NCBI GenBank assembly: GCA_038087875.1
Contig: JAXLNO010002298.1
Location: 1 to 64,000, forward strand
Direction of reading: 5' to 3'
DNA length: 64,000 nucleotides
Source: Malacoraja senta
Lineage: Eukaryota
The position numbers and the translations under genes were made by a program. Under the pieces are notes generated by a model. It did no database searches. It had not been told where the DNA came from and was given only the letters and a program-made list of their open reading frames with translations. Every line of letters begins with the position of its first letter. Position 1 is the stretch's first letter. Below are positions 24,589-64,000 of this stretch, in pieces.

Positions 24589-25601
24589 GTAAGTGATAAG
24601 GGTTTGTTCTTCATACTTAGAGTCATGATTGAGTTTTGATGTCGCTTATTGATCCTGAAATTTGAGTGCAATATTTTCTTCCAGTTTGAGTGGTCTAACT
24701 CTGTTATGAATACCTTATTCTCAAATTTCAAATAACACATCCCGAACCCCACTTATCCCCCCCTTCATTGTGCACGCATTTATCCCACCACCCAGTTATC
24801 CTATTCTCTTCCCTTCCTCTTTCAACTCATTTCTCACCCTTCCAATTGCAGAGTATTCCTTTTATGTTCTTGCTCCACTTCCACCCATATCCCTCCCTCT
24901 GTTACTGATCTAACTGTAGATCAGTCAGTATTAGTTGACCTGATCTATGTCATGTTTTACTGCATGCTGCTGTGTACTCAAACAGTCATCATATTATCTA
25001 GTCTGTTAGTCCAGCCTCTAGTTAGATTCGTTGCTGAGCTTGAGCTAACAACACCTAAGTATTTGAGCTCTGTGTGTTTACTATAACAAACACCTTATTC
25101 TTATGTATGGATCCTGTTATTACACATGTTTATACTGACAACCTTTTGTCTCCATTTCACCCCTCCATTTTTTCATTATCTCCATCCATCTACTCATCAC
25201 CATCCCCCACCTGTATCCACCTATCACTCGCCATGCTTTGTCTCATGCCTACTTCCCTTCCCCAGTTGTCACTCTCCCATTCCATCAGCCTGAGAATGCA
25301 TCCTGACATGAAACGTCATCAATCCATTCCCTCCACAGATGCTGCCTGAGTTCATCTCCCTGAGTTTCTCCAACACTTAGCGTTTGATCAACATTCCACA
25401 ATCTGCAGTTTCTTGTGTCTCCATGGAGACCCACTGGTCAGCATGGGCAGATTGCTGCAGAGGGCCTGTTTCCATGCTGTTCCATGATGATGAATTATTA
25501 CGTACAACTTAGTAAAGATTAATTGTCTGCAATATTTCTAATGACAAGGTCAGTGAAAAATTATTGTCCAACATTTACACATTTGTTCTCTTTTCCTACA
25601 G

Positions 25602-25946
25602 GAAGTGGACATTATATTTACTTTTTCCATCAGGAAGGCAACTTTGTATTGAAAGGACCAGACAGTCCTGGAAATGGCCCCATTGACTTGGAATGGAGGC
25701 CACACTCAGGGCAACAAACCACAAAGCAATTGGCCACTTTCCGCAGAGCAGATCAGCAGTGGGCCGTACAATGGAGTGATGAGTACAATCAAATACCAGG
25801 CATCTCCCAGTGGATGCATGCGGACTGGGGTACCCTTAATCTGAGGATCAGGATGCCCACATTCAAATTTGCAGGACTGTTCACCTGGAATCAGACACAG
25901 CCCGCTGGGAAAATCCTGAGACAGTGGGAACTATTTGGGATCAAAG
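25602..25946 (+). CDS. Ig exon V'b copy 2 (Cys-free V-like), intact
   Basis: TTTTCCTACAG| ... AAAG|GTAATA, 345 nt, open frame. Confidence 0.9.
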
Positions 25947-26507
25947 GTAATAGAGTCATAGTGTCACACAGCACTGAAACAGGCACTTTGGCCCAATTCA
26001 TCCATACTGACCAACTACCCATCTAAACATCCAATGTGCCCTCATTTGGCCCATATACCAACCGTTTTTCCATATACCTGTTTAAATGCCATTAAATACT
26101 GTACCTGCATCAAACACTTCCTCTCCTCGATCTTTCCATAAAGTATGTTAATGTACCACACTTTTTGTCAAAAAAATGCCCCTAATATTAAGGGGTATAT
26201 CAAATCTGCCCCACTCACCTTAATCATGTACTATCTAGTTTTTCATTCCACAGCCCTGGAAAAAAGACCATGTGCGTTTACTATAGATATGCCTCTCATG
26301 ATTCACCCCAATATGATCACCCCTCAGTAAAAGACATCCAAGGAAAATAATCAGTCTGAAGAAGGGTCTCGACCTGAAACATCACCTATCTATGTTTTCT
26401 AAAGTTGCTGCTTGATCTACTGAATTGCTGCTGCACTTTATGTCCTTTTATATATTAACCAGCATCTGCAGTTCTGCGTTTCTACTGTACTAAAAACATC
26501 CCTACCT

Positions 26508-26625
26508 GGAAGTGTTGATGTGGGAGACGAGGGGGCGAGGGGGACAGGTGGTCACTACCAGGAAGTGTTGATGTGGGAGACGAGGGGGCGAGGGGGACAG
26601 GTGGTCATTACCAGGAAGTGTTGAT
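26508..26625. repeat. 53-bp VNTR, ~2.2 copies (left arm)
   Basis: GGAAGTGTTGATGTGGGAGACGAGGGGGCGAGGGGGACAGGTGGTCACTACCA at 26508 and 26561. Confidence 0.9.
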
Positions 26626-26748
26626 GCCATCACTGAGCACGGCAGCTCAACATTCAGCCGACTGTCTGTCTGCAGGAAAAAGACAATTCTGCCGACAGTA
26701 GTTCAGAAAGCTGTTGGTGAACTGAACCACATGTGTCTGTTTCCAGAG

Positions 26749-27021
26749 TTGAGGCAGACTCACCGAGGCCAGTGATGGGCAGTGACATCACCCTCAGCTG
26801 TACCATCTCCAGACTCCCAGATACCATCAGTCTTCACTGGAAACCAAGAGGCTCATCTCAGCAGAACAGGAGGAACAACACTGATCAGATGCGTCTGAAT
26901 AACGCCGTCTATCTGATGATCCAACACATTGGAGCAGGAAATCCCAATCTGTACACATGGGAAGTGCAGGAAAATGGCTCCATTGTTCTCACTGGAGACA
27001 CCAATGTTGAAGTGGCTCAGG
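26749..27021 (+). CDS. Ig exon C2c (F-strand Cys replaced by Trp, LYTW); frame open but acceptor mutated
   Basis: 273 nt, donor CAGG|GTGAGT; acceptor TTTCCAGAG versus TTTCCACAG in the right arm, creating a CAG 2 nt upstream. Confidence 0.8.
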
Positions 27022-27709
27022 GTGAGTCCAAAGCTGCCTTGCAGCAGGTATTAAATAGTTCTTGATATCAAACTGTTCCACATGTTGTATAGTGAGCACT
27101 GACTCCACCCGTGGGCTTCCACACTGCAGGATGTGGACATTGCCTTTACCCTGGGACATGGTGTAAATATAAAATGGTGGCACTAAGATTGATGGAGCAA
27201 CACAGGAGAACCAAGAGATTCATTTCATAAATCAAAGGGGATAAAATACATCAATGGTGAGAAGCAAATGGTATCCATCTGGAACGGAGCTGAGAAATAT
27301 GAACTAACTAAAACTACAGGTGCAAGATTGGCTGAGGCATGTTCAATTCCACAGGTCAATTAATTACTCTGAAGAATAAACTGCCCAATAACACTTGACA
27401 GCCCCAGTGAAATGGAGGTGCTACATGAGTGATCATTGAGTGTTGATCTATTGTGGCAGACTTTACCTCAAGTCCAACAGAATCACTTTGCTGGGGGGGG
27501 GTGTGTGTCTGGGGAAGATGGACTTTGTTGAACAAAGGGCACTTGGACCAGCAGCCGGCGTAGTCCAGCTCCCAGCCGACTCCCCTCTTCCAGTGCGGCC
27601 CTCCCAGCTGACATTACAGAGCCGAGGGTTTGTCCCTGTGGAAACTCACAACATTGTATCTCGGCGTGTGTGGAAATCTAATTCTTTGTTCCCTGTCCCT
27701 CTCTTGCAG

Positions 27710-28048
27710 GTTTACATAACAAAACGTACACAGTTTATCGCTCAGTCACAGATCACAGTGAACTCGACCTGATTTGTGAAGCTTCCCCTGAGCTCAGTGA
27801 AACCAAATGGACTTGGAGATCACAACGTTTCCAGAATCAAGAGAAGGAAATAGCTTCTTCTCACAGGTCTGAGCCGATACATGTCGACAGGAGCTACTTT
27901 GGGAATCGACTGGAAACCACAGAGGGAAATGTGAATGGCAAGAATTTCCGTGTGAGGATTGTCCCCGTGCAGTTTGCAGATGCCGGAGTTTACACATGTT
28001 CCACGGGATCAAATATATATGTGACCATTGATCTAATCACAGTTACAG
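27710..28048 (+). CDS. Ig exon V3 (V-type), intact; missed by the ORF track
   Basis: CTCTTGCAG| ... ACAG|GTAGGA, 339 nt; LDLIC..KWTW..NRLE..NFRVRI..DAGVYTC. Confidence 0.92.
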
Positions 28049-28419: not shown

Positions 28420-28750
28420 TTGGAATGTGTCAGTGTGGGGAAGGGTTTGACCCCAGCACAGTGGAATGTGTCAGTGTGGGGAAGGGTTTGACTCCAGCAC
28501 AGTGGAATGTGTCAGTGTGGGGAAGGGACAGTGGACTGGGGCAGTGTGGGAAAAGGGTTGACTCCAACACAGTGGATTGGGGCAGTGTGGGGAAGGGGTT
28601 GACTCCAACACAGTGGACTGGGGCAGTGTGGGGAAGGGGTTGATTCCAACACAGTGGACTGGGGCAGTGTGGGGAAGGGGTTGACTCCAACACAGTGGAC
28701 TGGGGCAGTGTGGGGAAGGGGTTGACTCCAAAACAGTGGACTGAGGCAGT
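28420..28750. repeat. ~41-bp VNTR, short allele (left arm)
   Basis: CAGTGGACTGGGGCAGTGTGGGGAAGGGGTTGACTCCAACA units. Confidence 0.9.
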
Positions 28751-29128
28751 GCTGTGACCAGCAGCTGCTTGTTGTGCAGTGTTTTGAGTTGGTTTCATTG
28801 ATTGTGGAAACTCAAGTTGCACAATATAAATGTAACCAATTACATTATTAAGTCTTTTCATTCACCTTCAAGGACTCAGCATTGACCCTCCATAGAAAAC
28901 CATTCCCACAGATTGGTCTTTTTACTGGAGATCACCCCTTCATCATTTGTCTGGTGTCTGTGGTCTCTTTTCTATTGCTGTTCACCGCAGCATACAATAA
29001 AACAGTTTCTAAACAATACGAGTTGTCCTTTAGGTCGGTCGTGGGGATATCAGGGCATTGATAAAGAAATCAATAGAGTAGAAACTCTGGCTGCTGTTCA
29101 AAATCACAATGATGTTCTTGTTACACAG

Positions 29129-29373
29129 TCAAAGCCGAACCATCTGATGCAGTGATTGAGGAAAACAAAGTTACCCTGATCTGCTCTGTGTCTCACGTCA
29201 CTGAGTCAATGAGACTGGTTTGGAACAGCAGTGATGGCAAAATTATGGGAGAGACATTTTTGAAGGATTCAAGAGAGGAAGTGTGGTCTTTGCAGCTGAT
29301 TATTCCAAAAGCTGGGACAGTGAGAAGGAAATGGACATGTGGATTGTTTCATCAAAACAGCCTCAAGCTGAGC
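29129..29373 (+). CDS. Ig exon C2d (WTC-type C2); last codons and splice donor removed by a 39-bp deletion
   Basis: TTACACAG| acceptor, RRKWTCGLF; the right arm has 39 extra nt that include AACG|GTAAGT. Confidence 0.85.
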
Positions 29374-29768
29374 TTGTGTTACATCACAACATGTTCTGCT
29401 CAGTTGCTGCTCTCTCTTTTGTATAATGGCCTCACGCCCAATGACTCAGCATTGATCTTCCAAGGAAAATCCTTACCACAGATTGATCTTTTTACCAGAG
29501 TTCACCCCCTAATCATTCGTATAGTGTCTATAGTCTCTCTTCTATTGCTGGTCACTTAGGAAAGGTATAAAGATAGAGATGCTGAACAACAGATTCTAAT
29601 GAAAATTGCTCCAGTCAACTGACAGCAGTGGCTGCTACAACAATGTGTAAAAAAGATCACACATGTATCTTAGGTACACATCAATTATCTTTCAAATGTT
29701 AAAGAGAAATCAGTTCATAACCATAACTACATGCATATGTTGCATGTCAATTGAACTATTAAGAATAA

Positions 29769-30101
29769 CTAGACCAAGAGCAGACCCGTTGGGTTGGGAC
29801 CCTGAACGTGCTTCAGACCCTGGGGTCTGGTTCCCGAACGTGCGGCAGCAGCCGTTATGGTGGCTTTCTAGCAGGAGGCGACAAAATGAGTGTGGGGGGG
29901 GGGGGTTATTTTAAAACGTGTACATAAAAATGTCTAAATCTAATGTGTTAGGGTATGTAAAAGTGTAATGTCTAGCGAAATGGAAAAAATCGCGGAATTT
30001 TCACGTGTGGTTTTGGCGGAGCAAGGAATCAAAGGCCAAATGTGACACCCACAAATAAATAAACACATCCACACACACACAGAGATTTAATAGTATATAG
30101 A
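29769..30101 (-). mobile_element. Complete 333-bp non-autonomous Helitron, left arm only
   Basis: Minus strand: 5' TCTATATAC..., 3' hairpin (ACCCAACGGGT) then CTAG; inserted between A and T with no TSD; empty site present in the right arm near 57536. Confidence 0.9.
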
Positions 30102-31270
30102 TTACAGAATTAACTATTGTTAATGGATGCGTATACACAATCGTTTACTTTATACGGTGATTAGATTTATGTTTATTGTTCTCTTGAGTACAATCTCTAC
30201 ATGTGAATCTAAACTTTTCCACTGCATACAATTCCAGGTTTGATGATTTCAGTGAACATTTCTACAATAGGTTTCGCATCTGATTAATCTCACATTCGGT
30301 AACATAGTTGTACCTTGACTGTAGTAAATACTTGACATTTCAGGCATTTCCAAACAAAATTCTAACTGCAGATTTCACAAGGACAAATAACAACCTTCAA
30401 CTACTACTGGAGTAATAATTAGACTTTTTTCCCAGTATAATCCTAAATAAAACAATTTCTGATTTTAAGTCTCCCATATTTCTATCAATGCCCAATGCTA
30501 CAGATCAAAGTGTAATTACACTGGAGCCTGTCGATTGATGGCATAATGTTATATCAGTGAATAAAGCAAAATCAAATATAAAGCATTTTGTGTTTACATG
30601 TTACAGAAACACAGATCTTTCAAACCCATACATGAGAGTAAAATTGAAGCAAGATTGCACCTTTGTAAAATGGACATTTCTTTAAATAAACCCAAGTGAG
30701 TGAGCCATGCCTCTCACACCTCACTGGGTAATGGATAGAACAGGTTTGTAGGGATATGGACCAAGCTTGGGGGAGGTAGGTAACTGGGACATGTAAGTTG
30801 GGCCGAAAGATTTGTTTCCACGCTGCATCACTCTATGACTCTCTGACTCTATTAGTTTCTCAGGCAATACGGCCCAGAGTAGGAATTCAGATCCTGCAGA
30901 GTCTCAGCTGTGAATCTGTATCCACGCCCTCTTGTGTAGACACATTGGTGAACACCTGGTTGACATCAGTTTAGATAATCGATCAACCTATTTTGTGTAT
31001 ATTTAGACCCAAAAATATTCACAATGTTCCAAAGGTAATGACGCAGAAAATATCAAACAGAAGTCCTCAGATGTTATGGACGCGAAATAAAAGGTACCCT
31101 GGACTTAGACGTGGCACAAATATTTCTCACTGTGTCCCAGTATTTAATTCAGAATGTTTATGATGTCACATCACAGACTGGAGTATTTAATTATGAAACA
31201 CGGTGGAGAAAGAAAATGAAAATGTCAATTTTGTCCTTCACAGGATCATTAGACATTTTGTCCTTCACAG

Positions 31271-31359
31271 ACATTAGGATCATCATAGTTCTGGGCTACT
31301 TGTCGATTAAACTGGCCGTTGCTCTTGAACTAATTTGCTGCGCTTTGTGGATGAACAGG
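31271..31359 (+). CDS. Transmembrane exon: (D)IRIIIVLGYLSIKLAVALELICCALWMNR
   Basis: TTTTGTCCTTCACAG| ... AACAGG|GTGAGA, phase 1/0; hydrophobic helix with Lys (31309-31311); second in-frame acceptor at 31244. Confidence 0.85.
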
Positions 31360-31478
31360 GTGAGAATTTCATGAGCTTTTCAATATATCAGAAACCAATG
31401 GCGGGGTGTCTCTGACATTGAGAAAATGGATGTTCATATTAGAGTGATGACAATCTGTATTTTAGTGTTTTTGCATAG

Positions 31479-31498
31479 AACAGTGCAGCACAGAAATC
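31479..31498 (+). CDS. Candidate 20-nt cytoplasmic micro-exon (NSAAQKS)
   Basis: GTGTTTTTGCATAG| ... TC|GTGTGT; phase 0/2 bridges the TM exon to the next candidate exon; identical in the right arm (55150-55169). Confidence 0.4.
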
Positions 31499-31522
31499 GT
31501 GTGTGGACGTGGCATCGAAGGA

Positions 31523-31966
31523 CGAGAAGCTGAAGCAAAGAAGTCGAAGCCAAATAGCCGAATGGAAACGAAGCCGAAACGCCAACGAACCGAAAGGGCG
31601 TGACGCCGAAACGCCAACAACCCGAAAGGCTGCGTCGCCTACAAGCCAACTAACCGAATGGCCGCTCTGCCGAAAAGCCAAATAATGGCTTGTGTGGGAA
31701 AATGCCCCCCACCCTCCCGTCTCCACCGGCCAGTGATGTGATGGACGAGTTGGTCTGGAACAATCGCTGACAAGTCCCGCCCCCCCGGCGACGTCATGTC
31801 CGTTATTTGACTTTTCGGCAGAGCGGCCATTCGGTTAGTTGGCTTGTAGGTGACGCAGCCTTTCGGTTTCTTGGCTTTTAGGCGTCCCGCCCTTTCGGTT
31901 CATTTGCCGTTTCGGCTTCGTATGCTTTCGGTTATTTGGCTTCGAATTCTTTGCTTCGGCTTCTCG
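31523..31966. mobile_element. Fold-back (MITE-like) element with ~160-bp internally repetitive TIRs
   Basis: CGAGAAGCTGAAGCAAAGAAGTCGAAGCCAAATAGCCGAA... mirrored by ...TTCGGTTATTTGGCTTCGAATTCTTTGCTTCGGCTTCTCG; CCGAA motifs about every 10 bp. Confidence 0.75.
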
Positions 31967-32056
31967 AACGGAGACTTTGGAAATAGATTTGTGGGTTTAT
32001 TGTGCATTTGCTTTGTGCTTGTTTGGTTTGTTGCCGGTGTTGTTTCTATCCCACAG

Positions 32057-32120
32057 TGAACATGTCAACAGTCCCAGTCTCAGTGCTGGTTATTACACTT
32101 CACAAAGACCATCTCCTCAG
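32057..32120 (+). CDS. Candidate 64-nt cytoplasmic exon (EHVNSPSLSAGYYTSQRPSPQ)
   Basis: TTTCTATCCCACAG| ... TCAG|GTCAGT; open in phase 2/0; conserved in the right arm (54529-54592). Read in phase 0 it begins with TGA. Confidence 0.45.
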
Positions 32121-32230
32121 GTCAGTGTGATATTTCTATGAGGGCAACTATTGCTGACTTTGGGGTGAATTCCTGATCTCCACTTGTGTCCAGTGAGGCT
32201 CTACACTTTGACACATTTTTATCGCTGCAG

Positions 32231-32281
32231 GGACTGGTGGTGACCCAGCTGTGTGTGGAGCTTGATGGAATGTGGATTTGA
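32231..32281 (+). CDS. Candidate terminal coding exon (GLVVTQLCVELDGMWI*)
   Basis: TTTTTATCGCTGCAG| acceptor; frame depends on the two preceding candidate exons; right-arm copy at 54368-54418. Confidence 0.35.
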   Translation, partial: GLVVTQLCVELDGMWI

Positions 32282-32994
32282 GACTGTGGGTCATCAGTGA
32301 GTGATCTCGGCTGGACTCACTCTGCCAAAGTGTTGAATTAAGCCGAGCTGTTCAAATGGGAAGGAATGACACGGGGCTCAGTGATCATGGGGTCACCACT
32401 GATTCTGTTGACATAGTGGGAGTGGAACCCTAGTAGAAGGCAGTCTCCACACACTAACCCATGGAACTGCTTTCAGCAGAGTGCCAACAGTCTGCATTGG
32501 AAACTCAGCAATATAATTACTGTCAGTTGTGTCCTTCCTCCCAGCTAAACTCTGCATTCACTCACCACAACACTGAGGTCAATCCATCAATGATCCAATG
32601 AAGCATTTCTTCAGCAAATAACCAACTCACTTACCTGACTTCAATCTTTGTCTCATTGATCCAACTGCTGACATCATCTGGTGAATGACCCACTCACGCT
32701 TTCTGAGTGCTGTGACATTGTCGTCTCTCCTAACTGTCATAAGTCTGTCTTGTGCGCAGACCCCATCCCGACTGCAATAACAGACTGACTGCAGTCCCTC
32801 TGACTGCAGTAACTTTGTGCTGGAACCAACACAAATTTAAGGTAAAATCCTGCTGTGGTAACCAATAGAAACTGCAGAACCCCCTTTGATCTGGCACTGT
32901 TTTCCCACTCTCCCTCCCATGTGAACTTGGGCAAACATCATTTTGGCTCTCTCCCTGGAGTGCCTGTGCCGGCCAATAGATTTAATATTCACTA

Positions 32995-33240
32995 GACTTG
33001 TGGACTCACAGTTGACTCAGTCATGCCTTGTGAACTCCCAGTCCATTCAGTCATGGGTTGTGGACTCACAATTCACTCATTCATGGCTTGTGGACTCACA
33101 GTTCACTCAGCCACGACTTGTGGACTCAAAGTTCACTCAGCCATGGCTTGTGGACTCACAGTTCACTCAGCCACAGCTTGCGGACTCACAGTTCTCTCAC
33201 TCACGGCTTGCGGACTCACTATTCACTCACTCACGGCTTC
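32995..33240. repeat. 30-bp minisatellite, ~8 copies
   Basis: GGACTCACAGTTCACTCAGCCATGGCTTGT units; mirrored at ~53410-53655. Confidence 0.9.
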
Positions 33241-33729
33241 TTGCTATTAAACAAATCCAATTCCATTTATTGTGTAAACAAACCTTCTGCATGTCAGTAT
33301 TTCCCAAAGCAATTCAGGCCACTGTCCCACATCTATATTACTAAAACTAAGATCTTGACCACTTTCTGACTTTCTGTTTCGTGATTTCTGAAAGAACGCC
33401 ACTACTTACGGCCGTGATTTCTGGCCCCCTAGCTCAGAGCCCCCCCGCTGAGCTGGACCAAAGGATTTTTCCCATCGATGAAAAATCAGAGAGTTATTAA
33501 TGTTTTAAAAAATGTCACCATTCTCTCTGCTGCCCCCGCTGGTGGCAGGGGGGTGGACTATAAAACCCGGAAGTGCCGTGCCTCACTCAGTCTCTGCGAG
33601 ATGGAGGAAGCTTGCAAAATTGTTTGTCTTGTCTTTTAAAAATATGTTTTCAGAAAATGTTTTGGTTGTAAAGTGTTTCCGGTATATGTTGTTAATACAT
33701 GAAACGCGTACTTTCCTACCTGTTAAAAA

Positions 33730-33875
33730 CCGCCAAAGTGGTGATTTTTTGCGCTGTAAAAATTGTGGAAGTCGGGATAACCGTGAGAGACATCTATCCT
33801 ACTTCGGAATTCCAAAAGTGAAGAGAAATGAAGGTAAAGAGTAGCGAGAGCTGAATGGACAACAACAGCTAAAAT
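33730..33875 (+). pseudogene. Partial, frameshifted THAP-domain fragment
   Basis: FCAVK.. / CKNCGSRDNRERHLSYFGIPKVKRNEGKE; inverted paralogue of 34295-34518. Confidence 0.5.
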
Positions 33876-34294
33876 TGAAAACGCTGCTGAAGCTAAATCT
33901 ATCATTAAAAAAAATCTGCAGACTTACGAGTGGTGTGTGGAAAAGTAAGTGTTCTACTGTATCATTATGCTATTGAGATGTATGTATTTGGCAAATAATA
34001 AAATGTCCGGACAGCTTAAACACCCACTCCCTTTCAATAGGATATTGTCAATTTGCTGAGGTTGATTATGTCCAATGAACAGCTAACAATTATGCCATTG
34101 CATCTGAGTAAAATGTAATTCCAAACCGACGTATGGTTTGCGATTTTTTTAATGATAAATTTGGCTTCAGAGGCGTTTTTTTAATGTAAAAACCCACTTG
34201 AGAACCATGGGCGATTTTAAAATTGTATACCAGATTTATCACTTCTGAAACTTTTTAGATGCCAAAGGAATCAACAAAAAACACAAACAATGCC

Positions 34295-34518
34295 TTACTG
34301 GTGATGAAATGCAGTGAGCAAACGCGATAGTTCCCAATATTTTCAATCTCGATATCTGCACGGCCAATGTTCACCAAGCACTTTAGCTGTTGTTGTCCCT
34401 TCAGCTCTCGCTTCTCTTTACCTTCATTTCTCCTCACTTTTGGAAATCTGAAGTAGGATAAATGTCTCTCACGCTTACCCTGATTTCCATAATTATTTAC
34501 AGCGCAGAAATTGACCAT
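34295..34518 (-). pseudogene. Degenerate THAP zinc-finger domain (transposon-derived)
   Basis: MVNFCAVNNYGN..SYFRFPK...RADIE..YRVCSLHF matches the C-x2-4-C...FxFP...C-x2-H-F layout; second Cys and the conserved Trp are lost. Confidence 0.7.
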
Positions 34519-36490
34519 TTCGGCGGTTTTAACGGGCCCGCTACGCTGGAAACAATGGTCAGTGCTTACCTGCAGTTCATCGCATGTACTCCAGTTGGCG
34601 TAGCAACAGTATGGGTCATGGGTCGTGACCCTGCTNNNNNNNNNNNNNNNNNNNNNNNNNNNNNNNNNNNNNNNNNNNNNNNNNNNNNNNNNNNNNNNNN
34701 NNNNNNNNNNNNNNNNNNNNNNNNNNNNNNNNNNNNNNNNNNNNNNNNNNNNNNNNNNNNNNNNNNNNNNNNNNNNNNNNNNNNNNNNNNNNNNNNNNNN
34801 NNNGTCTGTGTATGTGTCTGTGTCTGTGTGTGAGTGTCTGTGTGAATGTCTGTGTGAATGTCTGTGTGTGTCTGTGTGTGTGTGTATGTCTGTGTGGTGG
34901 AGGGTGTGTGTGATCAACAAATAACAAATAGTACAAATAATATACTATTTCATAGTTCAGAGCTTATTCGTTATGTTGAATAGCCTGATGGCTGTCAGGA
35001 AGAAACTGTTCCTCAATGTGGATGTTACAGATTTCAGTTTACAAAAGTCGGATGTGACTCCAGAAGTCGGGCATAAGTCACAGTCCACAAGCCGTGATTC
35101 AGTCTGTCAGTCCAGAGGCCACGAGTGCGTGAGTCAGTTCAGAGGCCACGAGTTAGTCCCAAGGCAGTGAGTGAGTCCAGAGGCCATGAGTAGGTCACTC
35201 ACCGCACTCTCCCCCTCCCCCCTCCACTGACATCCCCCACCTCAAGACGCTGCCCTCCGCCTGGCTATAGGATGCTCCACGTCCTGAATCCGCCCCCATC
35301 CCCCGCTGCAGGACACCCCCTCCCTCATCAGCCCACGAGAGCCCCCGCTTGAAGCCGTCCCCCTCCCTCGGCTGCAGGACGTTTGCCACCCCCCACCCCA
35401 CCCCGACAGCCCCCGCCTCAAAAAATGTTTTGCACCAATTCTTCAGTGAGTCCAGAGGATTGAGAATTACAACAAACAATGGAATTCTTTAATTTACCAC
35501 AACCAAGAAATGGAAGGATGCACCTTGATGATGACAATCCAGAATTGCTGCAGGAATTGCAATACGGTAGAACTGAACAACAGCAATTTGTTGAGGAGAA
35601 TGGGCCTCTGCTGAATGCTGAGCAGAGAGCAGTGTCTGCACTCAATTGAACAGAAGATGAAGACATTCCCCTTCAGCAGACCCAATTCCTCATTCAATCA
35701 AGTTTTGCTTTGACGATCGATAAAGGACAAGGACAAACAATGCAGAAGGTGTTGATCTACCTCGACAAACCGGTCTTTCAGCATGGACAACTATATGTGA
35801 ATCTTAGCCGAGGAAAGATGAAGGGAAATGTCAACGTTTTCCTGAAGATGGAACATCGACCAAGAATATTGTCATTAAAAGCGTGCTTCGTTGAATGATG
35901 ACTTCTGAGATAAATTCTCAGATTTTCTTTGTTAAAATTTGACCGTTCAATCTCTCTATATTTAAATTGCCTTTATTTTAAATCAACAGCAGAGACAAAG
36001 ACAGTGAGTAGCAACAAGAGACACAACAAGAAAGAACTTAATAATTCTCATCTTTAACATTTAAATTGTTCTTATATTTTAAGAGTCATTCACATTTTAA
36101 ACTTTAATAAATCATTTTCCCACTTTTCATGCCGGCGTGTTCTTCATCACAATGGGAACCTAATGGGCAGGAATGGCTGTTCTGTGGGAGACCCACATGA
36201 GTGCATGGGGGGGGTTGTGGGAAGATGGACTGAATGCATGGGGGGAGGGGAATGGCAAGGAGCAGAGTGGGGTGAAGGGAGGAGGGGTGACAGAGTGAAC
36301 TGCCAGCATACCTGGTGTGAGTGACTGCACTGCCAGCCCACGAGCCGTGAGTAAGTGAACTGCCAGCCCACCAGCCGTGAGTGACTGAACTGCCAGCCCA
36401 ATAATCCATTCAGTCCACCCTCTCCCCCTTCTCTCACAGAGTCTGTCACCTGTTTTGGGCACAATTTCGGGCAGTTTCTCAGCTGCCAGT

Positions 36491-37505: not shown

Positions 37506-37539
37506 ATTAAGAAGGAATTGCAGATGCTTGAAAAATCGA

Positions 37540-53316: not shown

Positions 53317-54682
53317 TGTGGGACAGTAGCCTGAATTGCTTTGGGAAATACTGACATGCAGAAGGTTTGTTTACACAATGCATTGAATTGGATTTGTTTA
53401 ATACCAAGAAGCCGTGAGTGAGTGAGCAGTGAGTCCGCAAGCCGTGTGTGAGAGAACTGTGAGTCCGCAAGCCGTGGCTGAGTGAACTGTGAGTCCACAA
53501 GCCATGGCTGAGTGAACTTTGAGTCCACAAGCCGTGGCTGAGTGAACTGTGAGTCCACAAGCCATGATTGAGTGAATTGTGAGTCCACAACCCATGACTG
53601 AATGGACTGGGAGTCCACAAGGCATGACTGAGTCAACTGTGAGTCCACAAGTCTAGTGAATATTAAATCTATTGGCCGGCACAGGCACTCCAGGGAGAGA
53701 GCCAAAATGACGTTTGCCCAAGTTCACATGGGAGGGAGAGTGGGAAAACAGTGCCAGATCAAAGGGGGTTCTGCAGTTTCTATTGGTTACCACAGCAGGA
53801 TTTTACCTTAAATTTGTGTTGGTTCCAGCACAAAGTTACTGCAGTCAGAGGGACTGCAGTCAGTCTGTTATTGCAGTCGGGATGGGGTCTGCGCACAAGA
53901 TAGACTTATGACAGTTAGGAGAGACGACAATGTCACAGCACTCAGAAAGCGTGAGTGGGTTCATTCACCAGATGATGTCAGCAGTTGGATCAATGAGACA
54001 AAGATTGCAGTCAGGTAAGTGAGTTGGTTATTTGCTGAAGAAATGCTTCATTGGATCATTGATGGAATGACCTCAGTGTTGTGGTGAGTGAATGCAGAGT
54101 TTAGCTGGGAGCAAGGACACAACTGACAGTAATTATATTGCTGAGTTTCCAATGCAGACTGTTGGCACTCTGCTGAAAGCAGTTCCCTGGGTTAGTGTGT
54201 GGAGACTGCCTTCTACTAAGGTTCCACTCCCACTATATCAACAGAATCAGTGGTGACCCCATGATCATTGAGCCCCGTGTCATTCCTTCCCATTTGAACA
54301 GCTCGGCTTCATTCAACACTTTGGCAGAGTGAGTCCAGCTGAGATCACTCACTGGTGACCCACAGTCTCAAATCCACATTCCATCAAGCTCCACACACAG
54401 CTGGGTCACCACCAGTCCCTGCAGCGATAAAAATGTGTCAACGTGTGGAGCCTCACTGGACACAAGTGGAGATCAGGAATTCACCCCAAAGTCAGCATGA
54501 GTTGCCCTCATAGAAATGTCACACTGACCTGATGAGATGGTCTTTGTGAAGTGTAATAACCAGCACTGAGACTGGGACTGTTGACATGTTCACTGTGGGA
54601 TAGAAACAACACCGGCAACAAACCAAACAAGCACAAAGCAAATGCACAATAAACCCACAAATCTATTTCCAAAGTCTCCGTT

Positions 54683-55125
54683 CGAGAAGCCGAAGCAAAG
54701 AATTCGAACCCAAATAACCGAAAACATACGAAGCCGAAACGGCAAATGAACCGAAAGGGCGGGACGCCTAAAAGCCAAGAAACCGAAAGGCTGCGTCACC
54801 TACAAGCCAACTAACCGAATGGCCGCTCTGCCGAAAAGTCAAATAACGGACATGACGTCGCCGGGAGGAGGGACTTGTCAGCGATTGTTCCAGACCCACT
54901 CGTCCATCACATCACTGGCCGGTGGAGAAGGGAGGGTGGGGGGCATTTTCCCACACAAGCCATTATTTGACTTTTCGGCAGAGCGGCCATTCGGTTAGTT
55001 GGCTTGTAGGCGACGCAGCCTTTCGGGTTGTTGGCGTTTCGGCGTCACGCCCTTTCGGTTCGTTGGCGTTTCGGCTTCGTTTCCATTCGGCTATTTGGCT
55101 TCGACTTCTTTGCTTCAGCTTCTCG
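54683..55125. mobile_element. Right-arm mirror of the fold-back element
   Basis: Reverse complement of 31523-31966. Confidence 0.75.
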
Positions 55126-55295
55126 TCCTTCGATGCCACGTCCACACACGATTTCTGTGCTGCACTGTTCTATGCAAAAACACTAAAATACAGATTGTCA
55201 TCACTCTAATATGTTCTGTGAACATCCATTTTCTCAATGTCAGAGACACCCCACCATTGGTTTCTGATATATTGAAAAGCTCATGAAATTCTCAC

Positions 55296-55384
55296 CCTGT
55301 TCATCCACAATGCGCAGCAAGTTAGTCCAAGAGCAACGGCCAGTTTAATCGACAAGTAGCCCAGAACTATGATGATCCTAATGT
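55296..55384 (-). CDS. Transmembrane exon, right copy: (D)IRIIIVLGYLSIKLAVALGLTCCALWMNR
   Basis: 89 nt, intact splice sites, alternative acceptor at 55411; Lys kept, no Glu. Confidence 0.85.
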
Positions 55385-56222
55385 CTGTGAAGGACAAAAT
55401 GTCTAATGATCCTGTGAGGGACAAAATTGACATTTTCATTTTCTTTCTCCACCGTGTTTCATAATTAAATACTCCAGTCTGTGATGTGACATCTAAAACA
55501 TTCTGAATTAGATATTGGGACACAGTGAGAAATATTGTGTCAAGAGTGAGAAATATTTGTGCCACCTCTAAGTCCAGGGTACCTTTTATTTCGCGTCCAT
55601 AACATCTGAGGATTTCCGTTTGATATTTTCTGCTTCATTACCTTTGGAACATTGTGAATATTTTTTTGGTCTGAATATGCACAAAATAGGTTGATCGATT
55701 ATCTAAACTGATGTCAACCAGGTGTTCACCAATGTGTCTACACAAGAGGGCGTGGATACAGATTCACAGCTGAGACTCTGCAGGATCTGAATTCCTACTC
55801 TGGGCCGTAATGCCTGAGGAGCTAATAGAGTCAGAGAGTCATAGAGTGATGCAGCATGGAAACAAATCTTTCGGCCCAACTTACATGTCCCAGTTACACT
55901 AGTCCTACCTCCCCCAAGCTTGGTCCATATACCTACAAACCTGTTCTATCCATCACCCAGTGAGGTGTGAGAGGCATTGCTCACTCACTTGGGTTTAGTT
56001 AAAGAAATGTCCATTTTACAAAGGTGCAATCTTGCTTCAATTTTACCCTCATGTATGGGTTTGAAAGATCTGTGTTTCTGTAACCTGTAAACAAAAAATG
56101 CTTTATATTTGATTTTGCTTTATTCACTGATATAACATTATGCCATCAATCGACAGGCTCCAATGAAATTACACTTTGTTCTGTAGCATTGGGCATTGAT
56201 AGAAATATGAGAGACTTAAAAT

Positions 56223-57178
56223 TAATATCATATTTATATAATAGTATTCTTAATGGAGAATTGCCATCAACAGAGGCAATTAGAGAAGACTGGGAAAAAT
56301 AATTAATGGCAACAATTTCTAAAGAAACATGGGAGAGGTATTTGATATATACATAAATGTTCGATTAACGCCAGACATAATTTAATTCAATTTAAAATAT
56401 AACATAGATTATATTATTCAAAAGTTAGGTTGAATAAATTTTATCCAAATATTTCTCCCATCTGTGATAAATGTCTTTCTTAAAATGCCAATATCACACA
56501 TTCTTTCGTTTCTTGCACAAAACTTCATGGATTTTGGTGGGATATATTTGATATATTTACCAGTTTATTTAAGATAAAAATGGAACCTAATATGGAAACG
56601 ATTATCTTCGGAGTAATAGGAGACGGAAACAAATTAAATATAACCCAAATTTCATTTTTTTAATTATGGTTTAATATCAGCAAAAAAACTCATACTTAAA
56701 TTTTGGAAAAATGCTACTATACCAACACTCAAAATGTGGATTGGTAATATGTTGGAAACTGCCCACTTGGAAGAAATGAGATTCTTCCTAATAGATAAAC
56801 AAGACCAATTCTTAACGAGTTGGTCTCCATTTATTGACCTTGTGGATTCATGTGATGCAACAGTATCGTAAAATTAAAAAATTCTGTGTTTGGGCGAAAA
56901 ATGATTAACAATATAAAAAAGCATCGACTTGTGGCGAGGGAGAATCTCCTTTCTGCTTCACTTTCTTACTTATTTCTTTTCTTTATCTCACACTCACTAG
57001 ACTTTTCTTTACTCTTCACTATTTCTTTCTTTCTCATTTCTTTCTAAAAAAAAAAGGAAGTTGTACTTAGAATGTTTTAATAATTGTGGGAACCTGTAAA
57101 AATGTACCATCAAAATGTAATGTACTCACTTCTAATAAATACAATATTTCTTTTTTTAAATAAAAAATAAATAATGGT
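56223..57178 (+). mobile_element. 5'-truncated L1-clade LINE, right arm only
   Basis: Same family as 3109-4106; 11-bp TSD AGACTTAAAAT (56212-56222, 57179-57189); empty site in the left arm near 30465. Confidence 0.88.
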
Positions 57179-57938
57179 AGACTTAAAATCAGAAATTGTT
57201 TTATTTAGGATTATACAGGGAAAAAAGTAAAATTATTACTCCAGTAGTAGTTGAAGGTTGTTATTTGTCCTTGTGAAATCTGCGGTTAGAATTTTGTTTG
57301 GAAATGCCTTTAATGTCAAGTATTTACTACAGTCACGGTACAACTATGGTACCGGATGTGAGATTAATCAGATGTGAAACCTAGTGGAGAAATGATCACT
57401 GAAATCATCAAACCTGGAATTGTATGCAGTGGAAAAGTTTAGATTCACATGTAGAGATTGTACTCAAGAGAACAATAAACATAAATCTAATTTATGATTG
57501 TATATACGTACCCTTTAACAATAGTTAATTCTGTAATTATTCTTTATTGTTCAATTGACATGCAACATATGCATGTAGTTATGGTTAAGAACTGATTTCT
57601 CTTTAACATTTGAAAGATAATTGATGTGTACCTAAGATAAATGTGTGATATTTTTTACACATTGTTGTAGCAGCCACTGCTGTCAGTTGACTGGAACAAT
57701 TTTCATTAGAATCTGTTGTTCAGCATCTCTATCTTTATACCTTTCCTAAGTGACCAACAATAGAAGAGAGACTATAGACACAATACGAATGATTAGGGGG
57801 TGAACTCTGGTAAAAAGATCAATCTGTGGCAAGGATTTTCCATGGAAGATCAATGCTGAGTCATTGGGCGTGAGACCAAAAGAGAGAGCAGCAACTGAGC
57901 AGAACATGTTGTGATGTAACACAAGCTGAGGAACTTAC

Positions 57939-58208
57939 CGTTCACCTTAAGATAGATTGAATTGCTCAGCTTGAGGCTGTTTTGATGAAACAATCCACAT
58001 GTCCATTTCCTTCTCACTGTCTCAGCTTTTGGAATAATCAGCTGCAAAGACCACACTTCCTCTCTTGAATCCTTCAAAAATGTCTCTCCCATAATTTTGC
58101 CACCACTGTTGATCCAAACCAGTCTCATTGACTCAGTGACGTGAGACACAGAGCAGGTCAGGGTAACGTTGTTTTCCTCAATCACTGCATCAGATGGTTC
58201 GGCTGTGA
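57939..58208 (-). CDS. Ig exon C2d, right copy, intact
   Basis: 270 nt, TTACACAG| ... AACG|GTAAGT; RRKWTCGLFHQNSLKLSNSIYLKVN. Confidence 0.9.
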
Positions 58209-58587
58209 CTGTGTAACAAGAACATCGTTGAGATTTTGAACAGCAGCCATAGTTTCTACTCTATTGATTTCTTTATCAATGCCTTGATATCGCCACGACC
58301 GACCTAAAGGACAACTCGTATTGTTTAGAAACTCTTTTATTGTATGCTGCAGTGAACAGCAATAGAAAAGAGACCACAGACACGACACAAATGATGAAGG
58401 GGTGATCTCCAGTAAAAAGATCAGTCTGTGGGAAGGGTTTTCTATGGAGGGTCAATGCTGAATCCTTGAAGGTGAATGAAAAGACTTAATAATGTAATTG
58501 GTTACATTTATTTTGTGCAACTTGAGTTTCCACAATCAATTAAACCAACTCAAACACTGCACAACAAGCAGCTGCTGGTCGCAGCAT

Positions 58588-60100
58588 TGCCCCAGTCCAC
58601 TGTGTTGGAGTCAAATCCTTCCCCACACTGCCCCAGTCCACTGTGTTGGAGTCAAACCCTTCCCCACACTGCCCCAGTCCACTGTGTTGGAGTCAAACCC
58701 TTCCCCACACTGCCCCAGTCCACTGTGCTGGAGTCAACCTCTTCCCCACACTGCCCCAGTCCACTGTGTTGGAGTCAAACCCTTCCCCACACTGACACAT
58801 TCCACTGTGTTGGAGCCTTCCCCACACTGCCCCAGTCCACTGTGCTGGAGCGAAACCCTTCCCCACACTGCCCCAGTCCACTGTCCCTTTCCTCACACCG
58901 CCCCAGTCCACTGTGCTGGAGCCTTCCCCACACTGCCCCAGTCCACTGTGCTGGAGTCAAACCCTTCCCCACACTGCCCCAGTCCACTGTGCTGGAGTCA
59001 ACCCCTTCCCCACACTGCCTCAGCCCACTGTGCTGGAGTCAAACCCTTCCCCACACTGCCCCAGTCCACTGTGTTGGAGTCTACCCCTTCCCCACACTGC
59101 CCCAGTCCACTGTCCCTTTCCCCACACTGCCCCAGTCCACTGTGCTGGAGCCAAACCCTTCCCCACACTGCCCCAGTCCACTGTCCCTTTCCCCACACTG
59201 CCCCAGTCCACTGTGCTGGAGTCAACCCCTTCCCCACACTGCCCCAGTCCACTGTGTTGGAGCCTTCCCCACACGGCCCCAGTCCACTGTGCTGGAGCCA
59301 AACCCTTCCCCACACTGCCCCAGTCCACTGTATTGGAGCGTTCCCCACACTGCCCCAGTCCCCTGTGCTGGAGTCAACCCCTTCCCCACACTGCCCAGTC
59401 CACTTTGCTGGAGCCTTCCCCACACTGCCCCAGTCCACTGTCCCTTTCCCCACACTGCCCCAGTCCACTGTGTTGGAGCCTTCCCCACACTGCCCCAGTC
59501 CACTGTCCCTTTCCCCACACTGCCCCAGTCCACTGTGCTGGAGCCTTCCCCGCACTGCCCCAGTCCACTGTCCCTTTCCCCACACTGCCCCAGTCCACTG
59601 TGTTGGAGCCTTCCCCACACTGCCCCAGTCCACTGTGCTGGAGTCAACCCCTTCCCCACACTGCCCCAGTCCACTGTGCTGGAGTCAAACCCTTCCCCAC
59701 ACTGACACATTCCACTGTGCTGGAGTCAAACCCTTCCCCACACTGCCCCAGTCCACTGTGCTGGTGCCTTCCCCACACTGCCCCAGTCCACTGTGCTGTA
59801 GTCAAACCCTTCCCCACACTGACACATTCCAGTGTGCTGGGGCCAAATCTTTCCCCACACTGCCTCAGTCCACTGTGCTGAAGTCAAACCCTTCCCCACA
59901 CTGCCCCAGTCCACTGTCCCTTCCCCACACTGCCCCAGTCCACTGTGCTTGGGCCAAACCTTTTCCCACACTGCCCCAGTCCACTGTGCTGGGGCCAAAC
60001 CTTTCCCCACACTGCCCCACTCCACTGTGCTGGGGCCAAACCCTTCCCCACACTGCCCCAGTCCACTGTGCTGGAGCCTTCCCCACACTGACACATTCCA
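58588..60100. repeat. ~41-bp VNTR (with 21-37 bp sub-variants), long allele ~1.5 kb (right arm)
   Basis: CCCCACACTGCCCCAGTCCACTGTG(C/T)TGGAG units; the 322-545 aa ORFs here are artefacts. Confidence 0.95.
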
Positions 60101-60462
60101 ATGGCAGGATGCCACACAGAGTCTCCTGTGAATGACACATGATACAGGATCCTCAATATACTCTCATTGGACCTTCATTTGGTTTATTTTTTTCTATGAT
60201 GGACCCATTTCCAGCGGGTGAATCAATTCCACATCATCGCCCTTAAATATGAAAAGGAAAATGCTTCAATGCCATACGCTGCCTGATGCACTTTCATGAT
60301 TGATTTTGTGTTGAGTAAAACACAAATAAATATCTGGAATTCTGGAGCAAAATCAATTCTTTAAAAGAAGGGAATATTTGGAGAAATTTGCACACAAATT
60401 GCCGTTTGCATTCAAAGTGGGTGTTCTACTACAATGAATCAAACAAGTTGGCAGTCTCCTAC

Positions 60463-60803
60463 CTGTAACTGTGATTAGTTCAATGGTCACATATATATAT
60501 TTGATCCCGTGGAACATGTGTAAACTCCGGCATCTGCAAACTGCACACGGACAATCTTCACATGGAAATTCTTGCCATTCACATTTCCCTCTGTAGTTTC
60601 CAGTCGATTCCCAAAGTAGCTCCTGTCGACATGTATCGGCTCAGACCTGTGAGAAGAAGCTATTTCCTTCTCTTGATTCTGGAAACGTGGTGATCTCCAA
60701 GTCCATTTGGTTTCACTGAGCTCAGGAGAAGCTTCACAAATCAGGTCGAGTTCACTGTGATCTGTGACTGAGCGATAAACTGTGTACGTCCTGTTATGTA
60801 AAT
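60463..60803 (-). pseudogene. Ig exon V3, right copy, +2 frameshift near its 3' end
   Basis: 341 nt versus 339; (AT)5 versus (AT)4 at 60491-60500 gives SNIYM*. Confidence 0.85.
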
Positions 60804-61489
60804 CTGCAAGAGAGGGACAGGGAACAAAGAATTAGATTTCCTCACACGCCGAGATACAATGTTGTGAGTTTCCACAGGGACAAACCCTCGGCTCTGGGAT
60901 GTCAGCTGGGAGGGCCGCACTGGAACAGGGAAGTCGGCTGGGAGTTGGACTACGCCGGCTGCTGGTCCAAGTGCCCTTTGTTCAACAAATTCCATCTTCC
61001 CCAGACACACACACACCCAGCAAAGTGATGCTGTTGGACTTGAGATAAGGTCTGCCACAATAGCTCAATACTCAATGATCACTCATGTAGCACCTCCATT
61101 TTACTGGGGCTGTCAAGTGTTATTGGGCAGTTAATTCTTCAGAGTAATTAATTGACCAGTGGAATTGAACATGCCTCAGCCAATCTTGCACCAGTAGTTT
61201 TAGTTAGTTCATATTTCTCAGCTCCGTTCCAGATGGATACCATTTACTTCTCACCATTGATGTATTTTATCCCCTTTGATTCATGAAATGAATCCCTTGG
61301 TTCTCCTGTGTTGCTCCATCAATCTTAGTGCCACCATTTTATATTTACACCATGTCCCAGGGTAAAGGCAATGTCCACATCCTGCAGTGTGGAAGCCCAC
61401 GGGTGGAGTCAGTGCTCACTATACAACATGTGGAACAGTTTGATATCAAGAACTATTTGATACCTGCTGCAAGGCAGCTTTGGACTCAC

Positions 61490-61762
61490 CCTGAACCACT
61501 TCAACATTGGTGTCTCCAGTGAGAACAATGGAGCCATTTTCCTGCACTCCCCATGTGTACAGATTGGGATTTCCTGCTCCAATGTGTTGGACCATGAGAT
61601 AGACGGCGTTATTCAGACGGATCTGATCAGCGTTGTTCCTCCTGTTCTGCTGAGATGAGCCTCTTGGTTTCCAGTGAAGACTGATGGTATCTGGGAGTCT
61701 GGAGATGGTACAGCTGAGGGTGATGTCACTGCCCATTACTGGCCTCGGTGAGTCGGCCTCAA
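61490..61762 (-). CDS. Ig exon C2c, right copy, intact with canonical acceptor
   Basis: 273 nt, TTTCCACAG| ... CAGG|GTGAGT; LYTWGVQ. Confidence 0.9.
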
Positions 61763-61884
61763 CTGTGGAAACAGACACATGTGGTTCAGTTCACCAGCAG
61801 CTTTCTGAACTACTGTGGGCAGAATTGTCTTTTTCCTGCAGACAGATAGTCGGCTGAATGTTGAGCTGCCGTGCTCAGTGATGT

Positions 61885-62217
61885 CATCAACACTTCCTGG
61901 TAGTGTCCACCTGTCCCCCTCGCCCCCTCGTCTCCCACATCAACACTTCCTGGTAGTGATCACCTGTTCCCCTCGCCCCCTCGTCTCCCACATCAACACT
62001 TCCTGGGAGTGACCACCTGTCCCCCTCGCCCCCTCGTCTCCCACATCAACACTCCTGGTAGTGACCACCTGTCTCCCTCGCCCCCTCGTCTCCCACATCA
62101 ACACTTCCTGGTAGTGACCACCTGTCCCCCTCGCCCCCCTCGTCTCCCACATCAACACTTCCTGGTAGTGACCACCTGTCCCCCTCGCCCCCTCGTCTCC
62201 CACATCAACACTTCCAG
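61885..62217. repeat. 53-bp VNTR, ~6 copies (right arm)
   Basis: Reverse complement of the 26508 unit. Confidence 0.9.
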
Positions 62218-62832
62218 GTAGGGATGTTTTTAGTATAGTAGAAACACAGAACTGCAGATGCTGGTTAATATATAAAAGGACATCAAGTGCAGGAGTAATT
62301 CAGCAGGTCAGGTAATATGAATATCACTGCCCATTAATTGGTACACGTGACAATAAAAGACCTCTGAATTCTAGAGAACATAGATAGGTGACGTTTCAGG
62401 TTGAGACCCTTCTTCAGACTGATTATATTTCTTGGATGTCTTTAACAGAGATTATATGGGAATGAATAAAATCATGAGATGCATATCTTAGTAAACGCGC
62501 ATGGTCTTTTTTTCCAGGGTTGGGGAATCAAAAACTAGTTAGTCCATGTTTAAGGTGAGAGGGGCAGATTTGATATACCCCTTAATATTAGAGGCAGTTT
62601 TTTGACAAAAAGTGTGGTACATGAACATACTTTATGGAAAGATCGAGAAGAGGAAGTGTTTGATGCAGATACAGTATTTAAAGGGCATTTAAACAGGTAT
62701 ATGGGGGGAAAAGGTTAAAGGGATATGGGCCAAATGAGGGCAAATTGGATGTTTAGATGGGTAGTTGGTCAGTATGGATGAATTGGGCCAAAGGGCCTGT
62801 TTCAGTGCTGTGTGACATTATGGCTCTATTAC

Positions 62833-63165
62833 CTTTGATCCCAAATAGTTCCCACTGTCTCAGGATTTTCCCAGCGGGCTGTGTCTGATTTCAGGTGAAC
62901 AGTCCCGCAAGTTTGAATGTGGGCATCCTGATCCTCAGATTAAGGGTACCCCAGTCCGCATGCATCCTCTGGGAGATGCCTGGTATTTGATTGTACTCAT
63001 CACTCCACTGCTGATCTTCTCTGCGGAAAGTGGCCAATCGCTTTGTGGTTTGTTGCCCTGAGTGTGGCCACCATTCCAAGTCAATGGGGCCATTTCCAGG
63101 ACTGTCTGGTCCTTTCAATACAAAGTTGCCTTCCTGATGGAAAAAGTACATATAATGTCCACTTC
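62833..63165 (-). pseudogene. Ig exon V'b, right copy, with nonsense mutation and 12-nt in-frame deletion
   Basis: TGG changed to TGA at 62891-62893; 333 nt versus 345. Confidence 0.88.
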
Positions 63166-64000
63166 CTGTAGGAAAAGAGAACAAATGTGTAAATGTTGGA
63201 CAATAATTTTACACTGACCTTGTCATTAGCAATATTGCAGAGAATGAATCTTTACTAAGTTGTAGGTTATAATTCATCATCATGGAACAGCATGGAAACA
63301 GGCCCTCTGTGGCAATCTGTCCACGCTGACCAGTGGGTCTCCATGGAGACACAAGAAACTGCAGATTGTGGAATGTTGATCAAACGCAAAGTGTTGGAGA
63401 AACTCAATGGAGATGAACTCAGGCAGCATCTGTGGAGGGAATGGATTGATGACGTTTCATGTCAGGATGCATTCTCAGACTGATGGAATGGGAGAGTGAC
63501 AACTGGGGAAGGGAAGTAGACATGAGACAAAGCATGGTGAGTGATAGGTGGATACAGGTGGGGAATGGTGATGAGTAGATGGATGGAGATAATGACAAAA
63601 TGGAGGCGTGAAATGGGGACAAAAGGTTGTCAGTATAAACATGTGTAATAACAGGATCCATACATAAGAAGAAGTTGTTTGTTATAGTAAACACACAGAG
63701 CTCAAATACTTAGGTGTTGTAAGCTCAAGCTCAGCAACGAATCTAACTAGAGGCTGAACTAACAGACTAGATAATATGATGACTGTTTGAGTACACAGCG
63801 GCATGCAGTAAAACATGACATAGATCAGGTCAACTAATACTGACTGATCTACAGTCAGATCAGTAACAGAGGGAGGGATATGGGTGGAAGTGGAGCAAGA
63901 ACATAAAAGGAAGACTCTGCAATTGGAAGGGGTGGCAAATGAGTTGAAAGAGGAAGGGAAGGGAATACGATAACTGGGTAGTGGGATAAATGCGTGCACA

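Follow-up and report, generated by a model that had tools for sequence, protein, structure and literature searches.

A candidate inverted segmental duplication of at least 39 kb, with decaying immune-receptor modules in both arms, in a contig of the skate Malacoraja senta

Does a mirror-image pair of receptor modules in a genome assembly record a palindrome that exists on one chromosome, or two versions of a locus that were joined head-to-head during scaffolding? The question is raised by contig JAXLNO010002298.1 of Malacoraja senta (assembly GCA_038087875.1), of which positions 1 to 64,000 were analysed and are referred to here as the window (64,000 nucleotides). A preliminary description, made from the letters of the window alone, had proposed a palindrome (39 kb or more) whose arms, each no shorter than 19 kb, flank a spacer of about 370 bp. 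As assembled, this layout is borne out: gapless exact seeds, BLAST self-comparison with chaining and a MAFFT (FFT-NS-1) alignment of the arms agree on a single collinear inverted repeat, in which 24769-44790 pairs with 64000-45162 across 371 bp. Our preferred reading, to which we give a probability of about 55%, is that one chromosome does carry this inverted segmental duplication, with arms of 19 kb or more, in a skate immune-receptor cluster. The assembled repeat consists of the following parts:

24769-44790, plus strand: left arm, aligned collinearly and in inverted orientation to 64000-45162; it holds a receptor 3′ module and about 13 kb of transposon-rich downstream DNA.
44791-45161, no strand: unique, AT-rich spacer of 371 bp, without an inverted partner.
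45162-64000, minus strand: right arm, the mirror copy, at least 19 kb long and extending past the window end.

Because the right arm is cut by the end of the window (64000), the arm length of about 19 kb is a minimum. At the outer side the repeat meets older structure: the left end of the left arm overlaps a 5-kb tandem duplication that is described below, and the outer 1.3 kb of the right arm is also similar to the tandem unit at 19373-20685. At the inner side, homology between the arms ends exactly at the 3′ termini of two long interspersed nuclear element (LINE) tails that border the spacer (44791-45161). The window contains nine runs of N in total, and those in the left arm lie at 34636-34803, 41063-41196, 41510-41646 and 44336-44535. 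Two of them, of 134 and 137 N, face homologous right-arm stretches of 145 and 118 bp; the lengths agree, which we count in favour of a real palindrome. The runs at 34636-34803 and 51698-51920 occupy mirror-homologous positions, each beside a CA-type microsatellite; the same type of sequence was unreadable or masked there in both arms.

The centre of the repeat is where the two arms have to be connected, and high-copy LINE sequence makes up most of it. Read from the left, its order is B′, a 200-N gap, A′, the spacer, A and B:

42804-43311 and 44193-44335, minus strand: B′, a LINE 3′ fragment and the mirror of B, split by an 881-bp insertion.
44336-44535, no strand: the 200-N gap, inside the left arm; its counterpart is right-arm 45410-45936 (527 bp), the 5′ part of A.
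44536-44790, plus strand: A′, a LINE (CR1/L2-like) 3′ tail, the last part of the left arm before the spacer, which pairs in inverted orientation with A.
45151-45936, minus strand: A, a 786-bp LINE 3′ fragment beside the spacer and followed by B.
45937-46643, plus strand: B, a LINE fragment that adjoins A.

The gap had been reported to lie next to the centre and is indeed found there, inside the left arm and 256 bp from the spacer edge. On its left, the final 143 bp of B′ (44193-44335) are 99.3% identical to 46079-45937 and run up to the gap, and the left contig stops at the exact homolog of the B/A junction (right-arm 45937). On its right, the next contig starts within A′, at the homolog of A position 45409, and carries A′, the spacer, A and B in one piece. 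Mirror order is therefore maintained across the gap, and both contig ends can be accounted for by a single gap within one copy of the LINE; it is from this order that we infer continuity of the left arm through the gap. The alignment of A′ to A (to 45409-45159) spans 255 columns with 13 mismatches in 251 positions and four gap columns (94.8% substitution identity), and among the roughly ten copies of the family in the window A is the best match of A′, by a narrow margin. A and B also form a local inverted repeat of their own within the right arm (45161-45789 and 45995-46631; 82% identical, separated by about 205 bp). This local repeat is mirrored in the left arm, which makes the centre a nest of inverted repeats.

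How different the arms are bears on every explanation of the locus. In trusted alignment blocks they differ by 526 substitutions in 14,716 aligned bases (3.57%; Kimura two-parameter distance 0.037) and by 134 small indels, 96 of which are 1-2 bp long; taken per kb, the divergence varies between 2.0 and 6.8%. Polarised at 5,137 sites with the ortholog from Leucoraja erinacea, which itself differs at 403 of them, derived changes number 77 on the left and 82 on the right. This symmetry shows arms of equal quality that evolved at equal rates. The split between left and right lies at about 40% of the depth to Leucoraja. By these alignments the arms are two independently evolving old lineages. The preliminary description had drawn attention to the arm-to-arm conversion that large palindromes permit; none is visible here. 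Tracts of 500 bp or more are absent, and the longest run of identity, 243 bp, compares with 236 bp for the 99th percentile of simulations, so that recent gene conversion between the arms has left no sign.

The ratio of transitions to transversions is 0.89 between the palindrome arms (24769-64000) and 0.80 between the tandem units (16456-26090). Such low ratios, together with the many 1-2-bp indels, are unusual for neutral divergence in vertebrates, and base errors of the assembly may be partly mixed in. The notion that the arm differences are mostly assembly errors was rejected, as one arm keeps the outgroup letter at many sites; it is also countered by the finding, from the contigs discussed below, that about half of the left-derived letters are common to a related organism.

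Larger differences separate the arms as well:

About 29768-30104, minus strand: left-only insertion, about 333-335 bp long, whose ends are Helitron-like; it belongs to a high-copy repeat and has its empty site in the right arm.
36578-39411, no strand: left-only segment of 2.85 kb between direct LINE repeats of 0.5 kb, of which the right arm has just one, at 49367-49868.
43312-44192, no strand: left-only insertion of 881 bp inside B′, with a duplication of about 6 bp (TGAGAT) and an (AATTG)n tail; empty site on the right.
56223-57189, minus strand: right-only LINE 3′ fragment of 967 bp with a target-site duplication of about 11 bp (ATTTTAAGTCT); empty site in the left arm.

Arm-specific insertions with clean empty sites had been claimed, and this holds for the elements at 29768-30104, 56223-57189 and 43312-44192, the latter two with target-site duplications. 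The first was examined for the hallmarks of Helitrons, namely an A/T target without duplication, 5′-TC, 3′-CTRR and a 3′ hairpin. Target and ends fit (an A/T target, 5′-TC...CTAG-3′ on the minus strand and no target-site duplication), and the 3′ hairpin of the insertion folds no better than shuffled sequences (z = -0.44). The right-only LINE fragment at 56223-57189 is probably L1-like, to judge by a motif. The segment at 36578-39411 may have been either inserted on the left or deleted by recombination on the right. It contains an open reading frame (ORF; 37755-38303, minus strand) in which Pfam found no match; its cysteine-rich motif, with an IYIDETK-type motif after it, resembles the GIY-YIG nuclease of Penelope-like elements, which we offer as a presumption. 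Tandem repeats have also changed length: in the V3-D4 intron, the copy number of a 41-bp minisatellite is about eight on the left (28421-28751) and about 40 on the right (58588-60090), a difference of 1.2 kb, and a 53-bp tandem repeat has 2.4 versus 6.4 copies.

Each arm carries exons D1, D2, V3, D4 and TM (transmembrane) of a receptor with multiple immunoglobulin (Ig) domains, oriented toward the centre:

25601-25946, plus strand: left D1, an open Ig-like domain with splice signals cag/G...G/gtaat; mirror 63166-62833.
62833-63166, minus strand: right D1, with a TGG to TGA stop (change at 62891) and a 12-bp in-frame deletion opposite left 25760-25771.
26745-27035, plus strand: left D2, a C2-like Ig domain, open; the mirror 61766-61476 is also open.
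27710-28048, plus strand: left V3, a V-set Ig domain of 339 bp, open.
60463-60803, minus strand: right V3, in which an (AT)n run has gained 2 bp (AT) at 60499-60500, leading to a frameshift and stops.
29128-29369, plus strand: left D4, truncated by a 39-bp deletion after 29369 that removed the last nine codons and the GT donor.
57928-58209, minus strand: right D4, complete with donor; the 39 bp are retained at 57966-57928.
31271-31359, plus strand: TM exon of 89 bp with a lysine in the helix; the mirror 55384-55296 has three differences.

The exon divergence given in the preliminary description is thus correct for TM (3/89) and approximately so for V3, where 10/339 had been stated and about 10-11 differences are found, but the 2-bp insertion in the right copy had been overlooked. 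Its two convergent receptor copies likewise stand as mirror modules, with the qualification that the window holds only a 3′ module of each gene and that both modules carry disabling lesions. Coding differences between the copies comprise 27 nonsynonymous and nine synonymous changes (ratio of nonsynonymous to synonymous rates, dN/dS, 0.84), and synonymous divergence (3.3%) equals that of non-coding DNA. Judged from these exons, the arms hold two decaying 3′ gene halves under neutral drift, and not two working receptors.

Independent information on the two lineages comes from short Logan contigs of four runs (X1 and X41, both from an organism A, and runs of two other organisms), compared over the gap-free left-arm stretch 28800-34400. 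The samples of organism A contain about two thirds of the words of a unique arm stretch, other organisms 0.1-0.2, and A is a close relative at about 0.7% from the left arm. At 25 of the 26 displayed sites that differ between left and right and at which the contigs depart from the left arm, they carry the right-arm letter; the 26th lies opposite an alignment gap. Organisms B and/or F are among the carriers at all 25 sites, which makes those left-arm letters derived and the right-arm letters ancestral. The joint that lacks the Helitron-like insertion at 29768-30104 is seen in four of four runs, and the 39 bp of D4 are seen in X1 and X2. These 39 bp, lost from the left D4, are present in the right arm, in L. 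erinacea and in contigs of organisms A and B. In X1 they are carried by a contig that otherwise resembles the left arm, which makes the deletion specific to the window's left copy; it may be very recent, polymorphic or an assembly error.

Across about 2.9 kb of X1 contigs, organism A shares some 16 left-derived letters with the left arm; about 15 others occur in the left arm alone, and about five letters are found only in A. No right-derived letter was found in organism A over the same 2.9 kb, although contigs of this kind cannot prove absence. The letters give a tree of the form ((left, A), right). X1 and X41 each show one contig type over stretches such as 32203-33032. In X41, two forms co-occur at three variant places at depths of about 1:3, and at about 1:1 at 30263, where the arms agree. 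In this sample the left-type form co-occurs with the form that lacks the Helitron-like insertion and with the variants at 31004/31010; this last pair does so in X1 as well. The depths of about 1:3 hint, weakly, at more than two copies.

Several points weigh against placing the palindrome on one chromosome. It is solely through the 200-N gap (44336-44535) that the left arm is connected to the centre. A′ and A belong to an abundant LINE family of which unrelated copies reach 95% identity, and the pairing of A′ with A alone is therefore no proof. Finally, given the tree above, organism A would be expected to have inherited the right arm, yet the right lineage, older than the split between left and A, went undetected in both samples of A. 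This weakens the case for a fixed palindrome without refuting it.

Some of these points lend substance to the strongest competing explanation, which we hold to be unlikely but which deserves to be taken seriously: a false duplication, in which two haplotype versions (deep alleles or haplotype-specific paralogs) were scaffolded head-to-head over the 200-N gap. Both contigs would then have broken in the same LINE-rich spot, and A′-spacer-A would be a local inverted LINE pair on the right contig and nothing more. A gap that separates two copies on one scaffold is one of four hallmarks of false duplications (PMC9516828), and the missing right lineage in two samples of organism A, despite its early branching, would be readily accommodated. 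A weak indication in the same direction is that the share of words of the central stretch found in X1 is only about 0.10 above that of the other organisms, which puts the spacer nearer to a distance of 2% than of 0.7%. Several observations speak against such a join. To accommodate a divergence of 3.6%, four kb-scale indels and the large minisatellite length differences across 19 kb or more of mostly non-coding DNA, an allelic block would have to be very old and non-recombining. Such differences are high for alleles, yet conceivable in an immune cluster; that a block of this age and length would require suppressed recombination is a point we count for the palindrome. Balancing selection on the copies, moreover, is improbable because they look neutral or dead (dN/dS 0.84, lesions). 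The mirror order B′-A′ / A-B would have to be mimicked by two independent contig ends by chance, and absence from contigs is no proof of absence. Long palindromes that do exist are also difficult to assemble through their centres.

Still less probable is that both copies are real and lie on the same chromosome in another orientation or position, for example as a tandem or dispersed duplication whose right contig was flipped or misplaced. Orientation over a gap depends on scaffolding, and the locus does duplicate in tandem (16456-20680 versus 21573-26090). Against this, the right contig contains A′-spacer-A-B in one piece and the left contig ends precisely where A′ is due, a mirror order that a flipped contig is not expected to recreate; the failure to detect the right lineage in organism A weighs on this arrangement and on the palindrome alike. 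A chimeric palindromic long read (from a missed adapter or a fold-back read) made into a hairpin contig would match the general shape, a short loop between arms about as long as a long read, but can be dismissed, since sequencing error cannot produce target-site-duplicated insertions or restore ancestral letters and the arms show three empty-site insertions (two with such duplications), retained ancestral letters and symmetric derived changes.

What favours the real palindrome is the combination of age and transposon differences, the neutral decay of both copies, the mirror order across the gap and the fold-back-like centre. The earlier contention that the repeat is an old, real duplication and not a chimeric read is upheld as far as the distinct lineages are concerned; the head-to-head position of both on one chromosome goes beyond what the data demonstrate. 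Some further weight comes from the cluster in L. erinacea. Downstream of the ortholog (CM054017.1), at a distance of about 8 kb, lies a convergent neighbour of the same family (locus L002, 27725-28939; 43-54% protein identity), and LOC129701495 and LOC129701496 point away from each other at a distance of 82 kb. Gene pairs in opposed orientation are thus common in this cluster, and the convergent pairs in an independent assembly are counted in favour of the palindrome. Those loci themselves cannot confirm it, because the split between left and right postdates the split from the genera of L. erinacea and A. radiata, and the inner arm DNA is unconserved there.

A palindrome of this shape could have arisen by fold-back synthesis. 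The ancestral chromosome would have contained the receptor gene together with some 13 kb of DNA downstream of it, and the LINE 3′ fragments A′ and A, opposed and 371 bp apart. After a break or a stalled fork beyond A, the strand would have folded back and A would have paired with A′; synthesis would then have copied everything to the left of A′ in reverse, giving the order gene, B′, A′, spacer, A, B and reversed gene. For the time since the duplication, the alignments show that the two arms have diverged separately and at the same pace, over about 40% of the time to the Leucoraja split, each acquiring transposons and lesions of its own. The finding of a single-copy spacer with inverted homologous edges agrees with the criteria used for human fold-back events (PMC3907307). 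The wider proposal, namely that this is an autosomal palindrome of at least 39 kb with a spacer of only 371 bp, born by fold-back at an inverted LINE pair, which survived without conversion or deletion for a large part of the divergence between skate genera and is one of several that drive gene birth and death in the immune clusters of skates, is put forward tentatively, as we judge it somewhat more apt to fail than to hold.

The receptor is probably of a CD4/LAG-3-like multi-Ig type and a member of a large elasmobranch family, a label that stops short of CD4 or LAG-3 proper: V3 has only generic V-set matches, and the rat CD4 D3-D4 structure 1cid aligns over its entire length but weakly (E = 0.15). 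The V3 exon of the sister tandem copy matches the Pfam V-set at 2e-6, and the matches of V3 in the PDB are V-type Ig domains; the remaining domains give weak Ig matches, and for D1 no significant match in Pfam or the PDB was found. Exhaustive HMMER and word-based searches showed that ‘uncharacterized proteins’ of sharks, rays and skates make up a large family; the V3 stretch had no match in a set of 5.8 billion proteins. The closest annotated gene is LOC129701495 of L. erinacea, with 93.9% protein identity over V3 and a collinear layout with the left gene at 85-91% DNA identity.

Within the left gene lies the direct tandem duplication that the left arm overlaps (16456-20680 and 21573-26090), with a period of 5.1-5.4 kb, exons D2-D3-D1 and a divergence of 4.8%. 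Set against the 3.5% of the inverted arms, this makes the tandem duplication the older event. The L. erinacea ortholog has a single copy of the unit. An intron of the left receptor gene houses a LINE reverse-transcriptase ORF at 15342-16900 (Pfam RVT_1, E = 3e-31), and a partial second copy of the tail of this LINE is found at 21573-22055. Farther to the left, a GA-rich satellite with units of about 100-128 bp occupies 1-5100 and is interrupted by N runs at 862-997, 2495-2628, 4797-4955 and 4969-5101. An Rfam scan gave no match.

If the palindrome is real, the locus documents, at the level of single bases, how inverted duplication at a pair of inverted LINE copies already in place enlarges an immune-receptor cluster in a cartilaginous fish, and it indicates that a long palindrome with a short spacer can last while its arms diverge and its genes die. 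If the join is false, gene counts for this receptor family in the skate would be inflated. Whichever layout holds, the receptor copies of the two arms do not warrant a count of two functional genes. The locus is useful for annotation of the family and as a case for assembly audit, and a specialist would not be surprised by it: inverted segmental duplications are already known as a kind of structure in multigene immune clusters.

Among known systems, the ampliconic palindromes of primate sex chromosomes have arms that are kept more than 99.9% identical by arm-to-arm gene conversion. They have in common with the repeat described here the large inverted arms, the short spacer and the mirror gene pairs; the arms of the latter, however, are 96.4% identical, lack conversion tracts and carry decaying genes. 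With the elasmobranch multi-Ig family (‘uncharacterized protein’ entries at NCBI) the genes of the window agree in exon types and order, but the left gene has an additional intragenic tandem unit and both 3′ modules are lesioned. With false heterotype duplications (PMC9516828; PMC8081667) the repeat has in common two diverged copies on one scaffold with a gap between them, here in a polymorphic immune gene family. The present case departs from them in divergence and transposon differences that are large for alleles, and in a gap that lies 256 bp inside an arm with mirror order continuing across it.

In human constitutional fold-back inverted duplications, inverted and non-inverted copies are likewise arranged around a short single-copy spacer (PMC3907307). 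Such a spacer was present at 21 of 21 junctions and measured 766 bp to 70 kb, so that the 371 bp found here are shorter, and at three of the 21 the edges shared LINE/SINE (short interspersed nuclear element) homology of about 300 bp at 90% identity (PMC3907307). The human duplications are megabase-sized, recent and located beside terminal deletions, whereas the skate repeat has about 20 kb or more per arm, is interstitial, old and 3.6% diverged, and is seen in an assembly only. What it has in common with the human subset is the pair of opposed elements at the spacer edges, formed here by LINE tails of at least 252 bp with about 95% identity.

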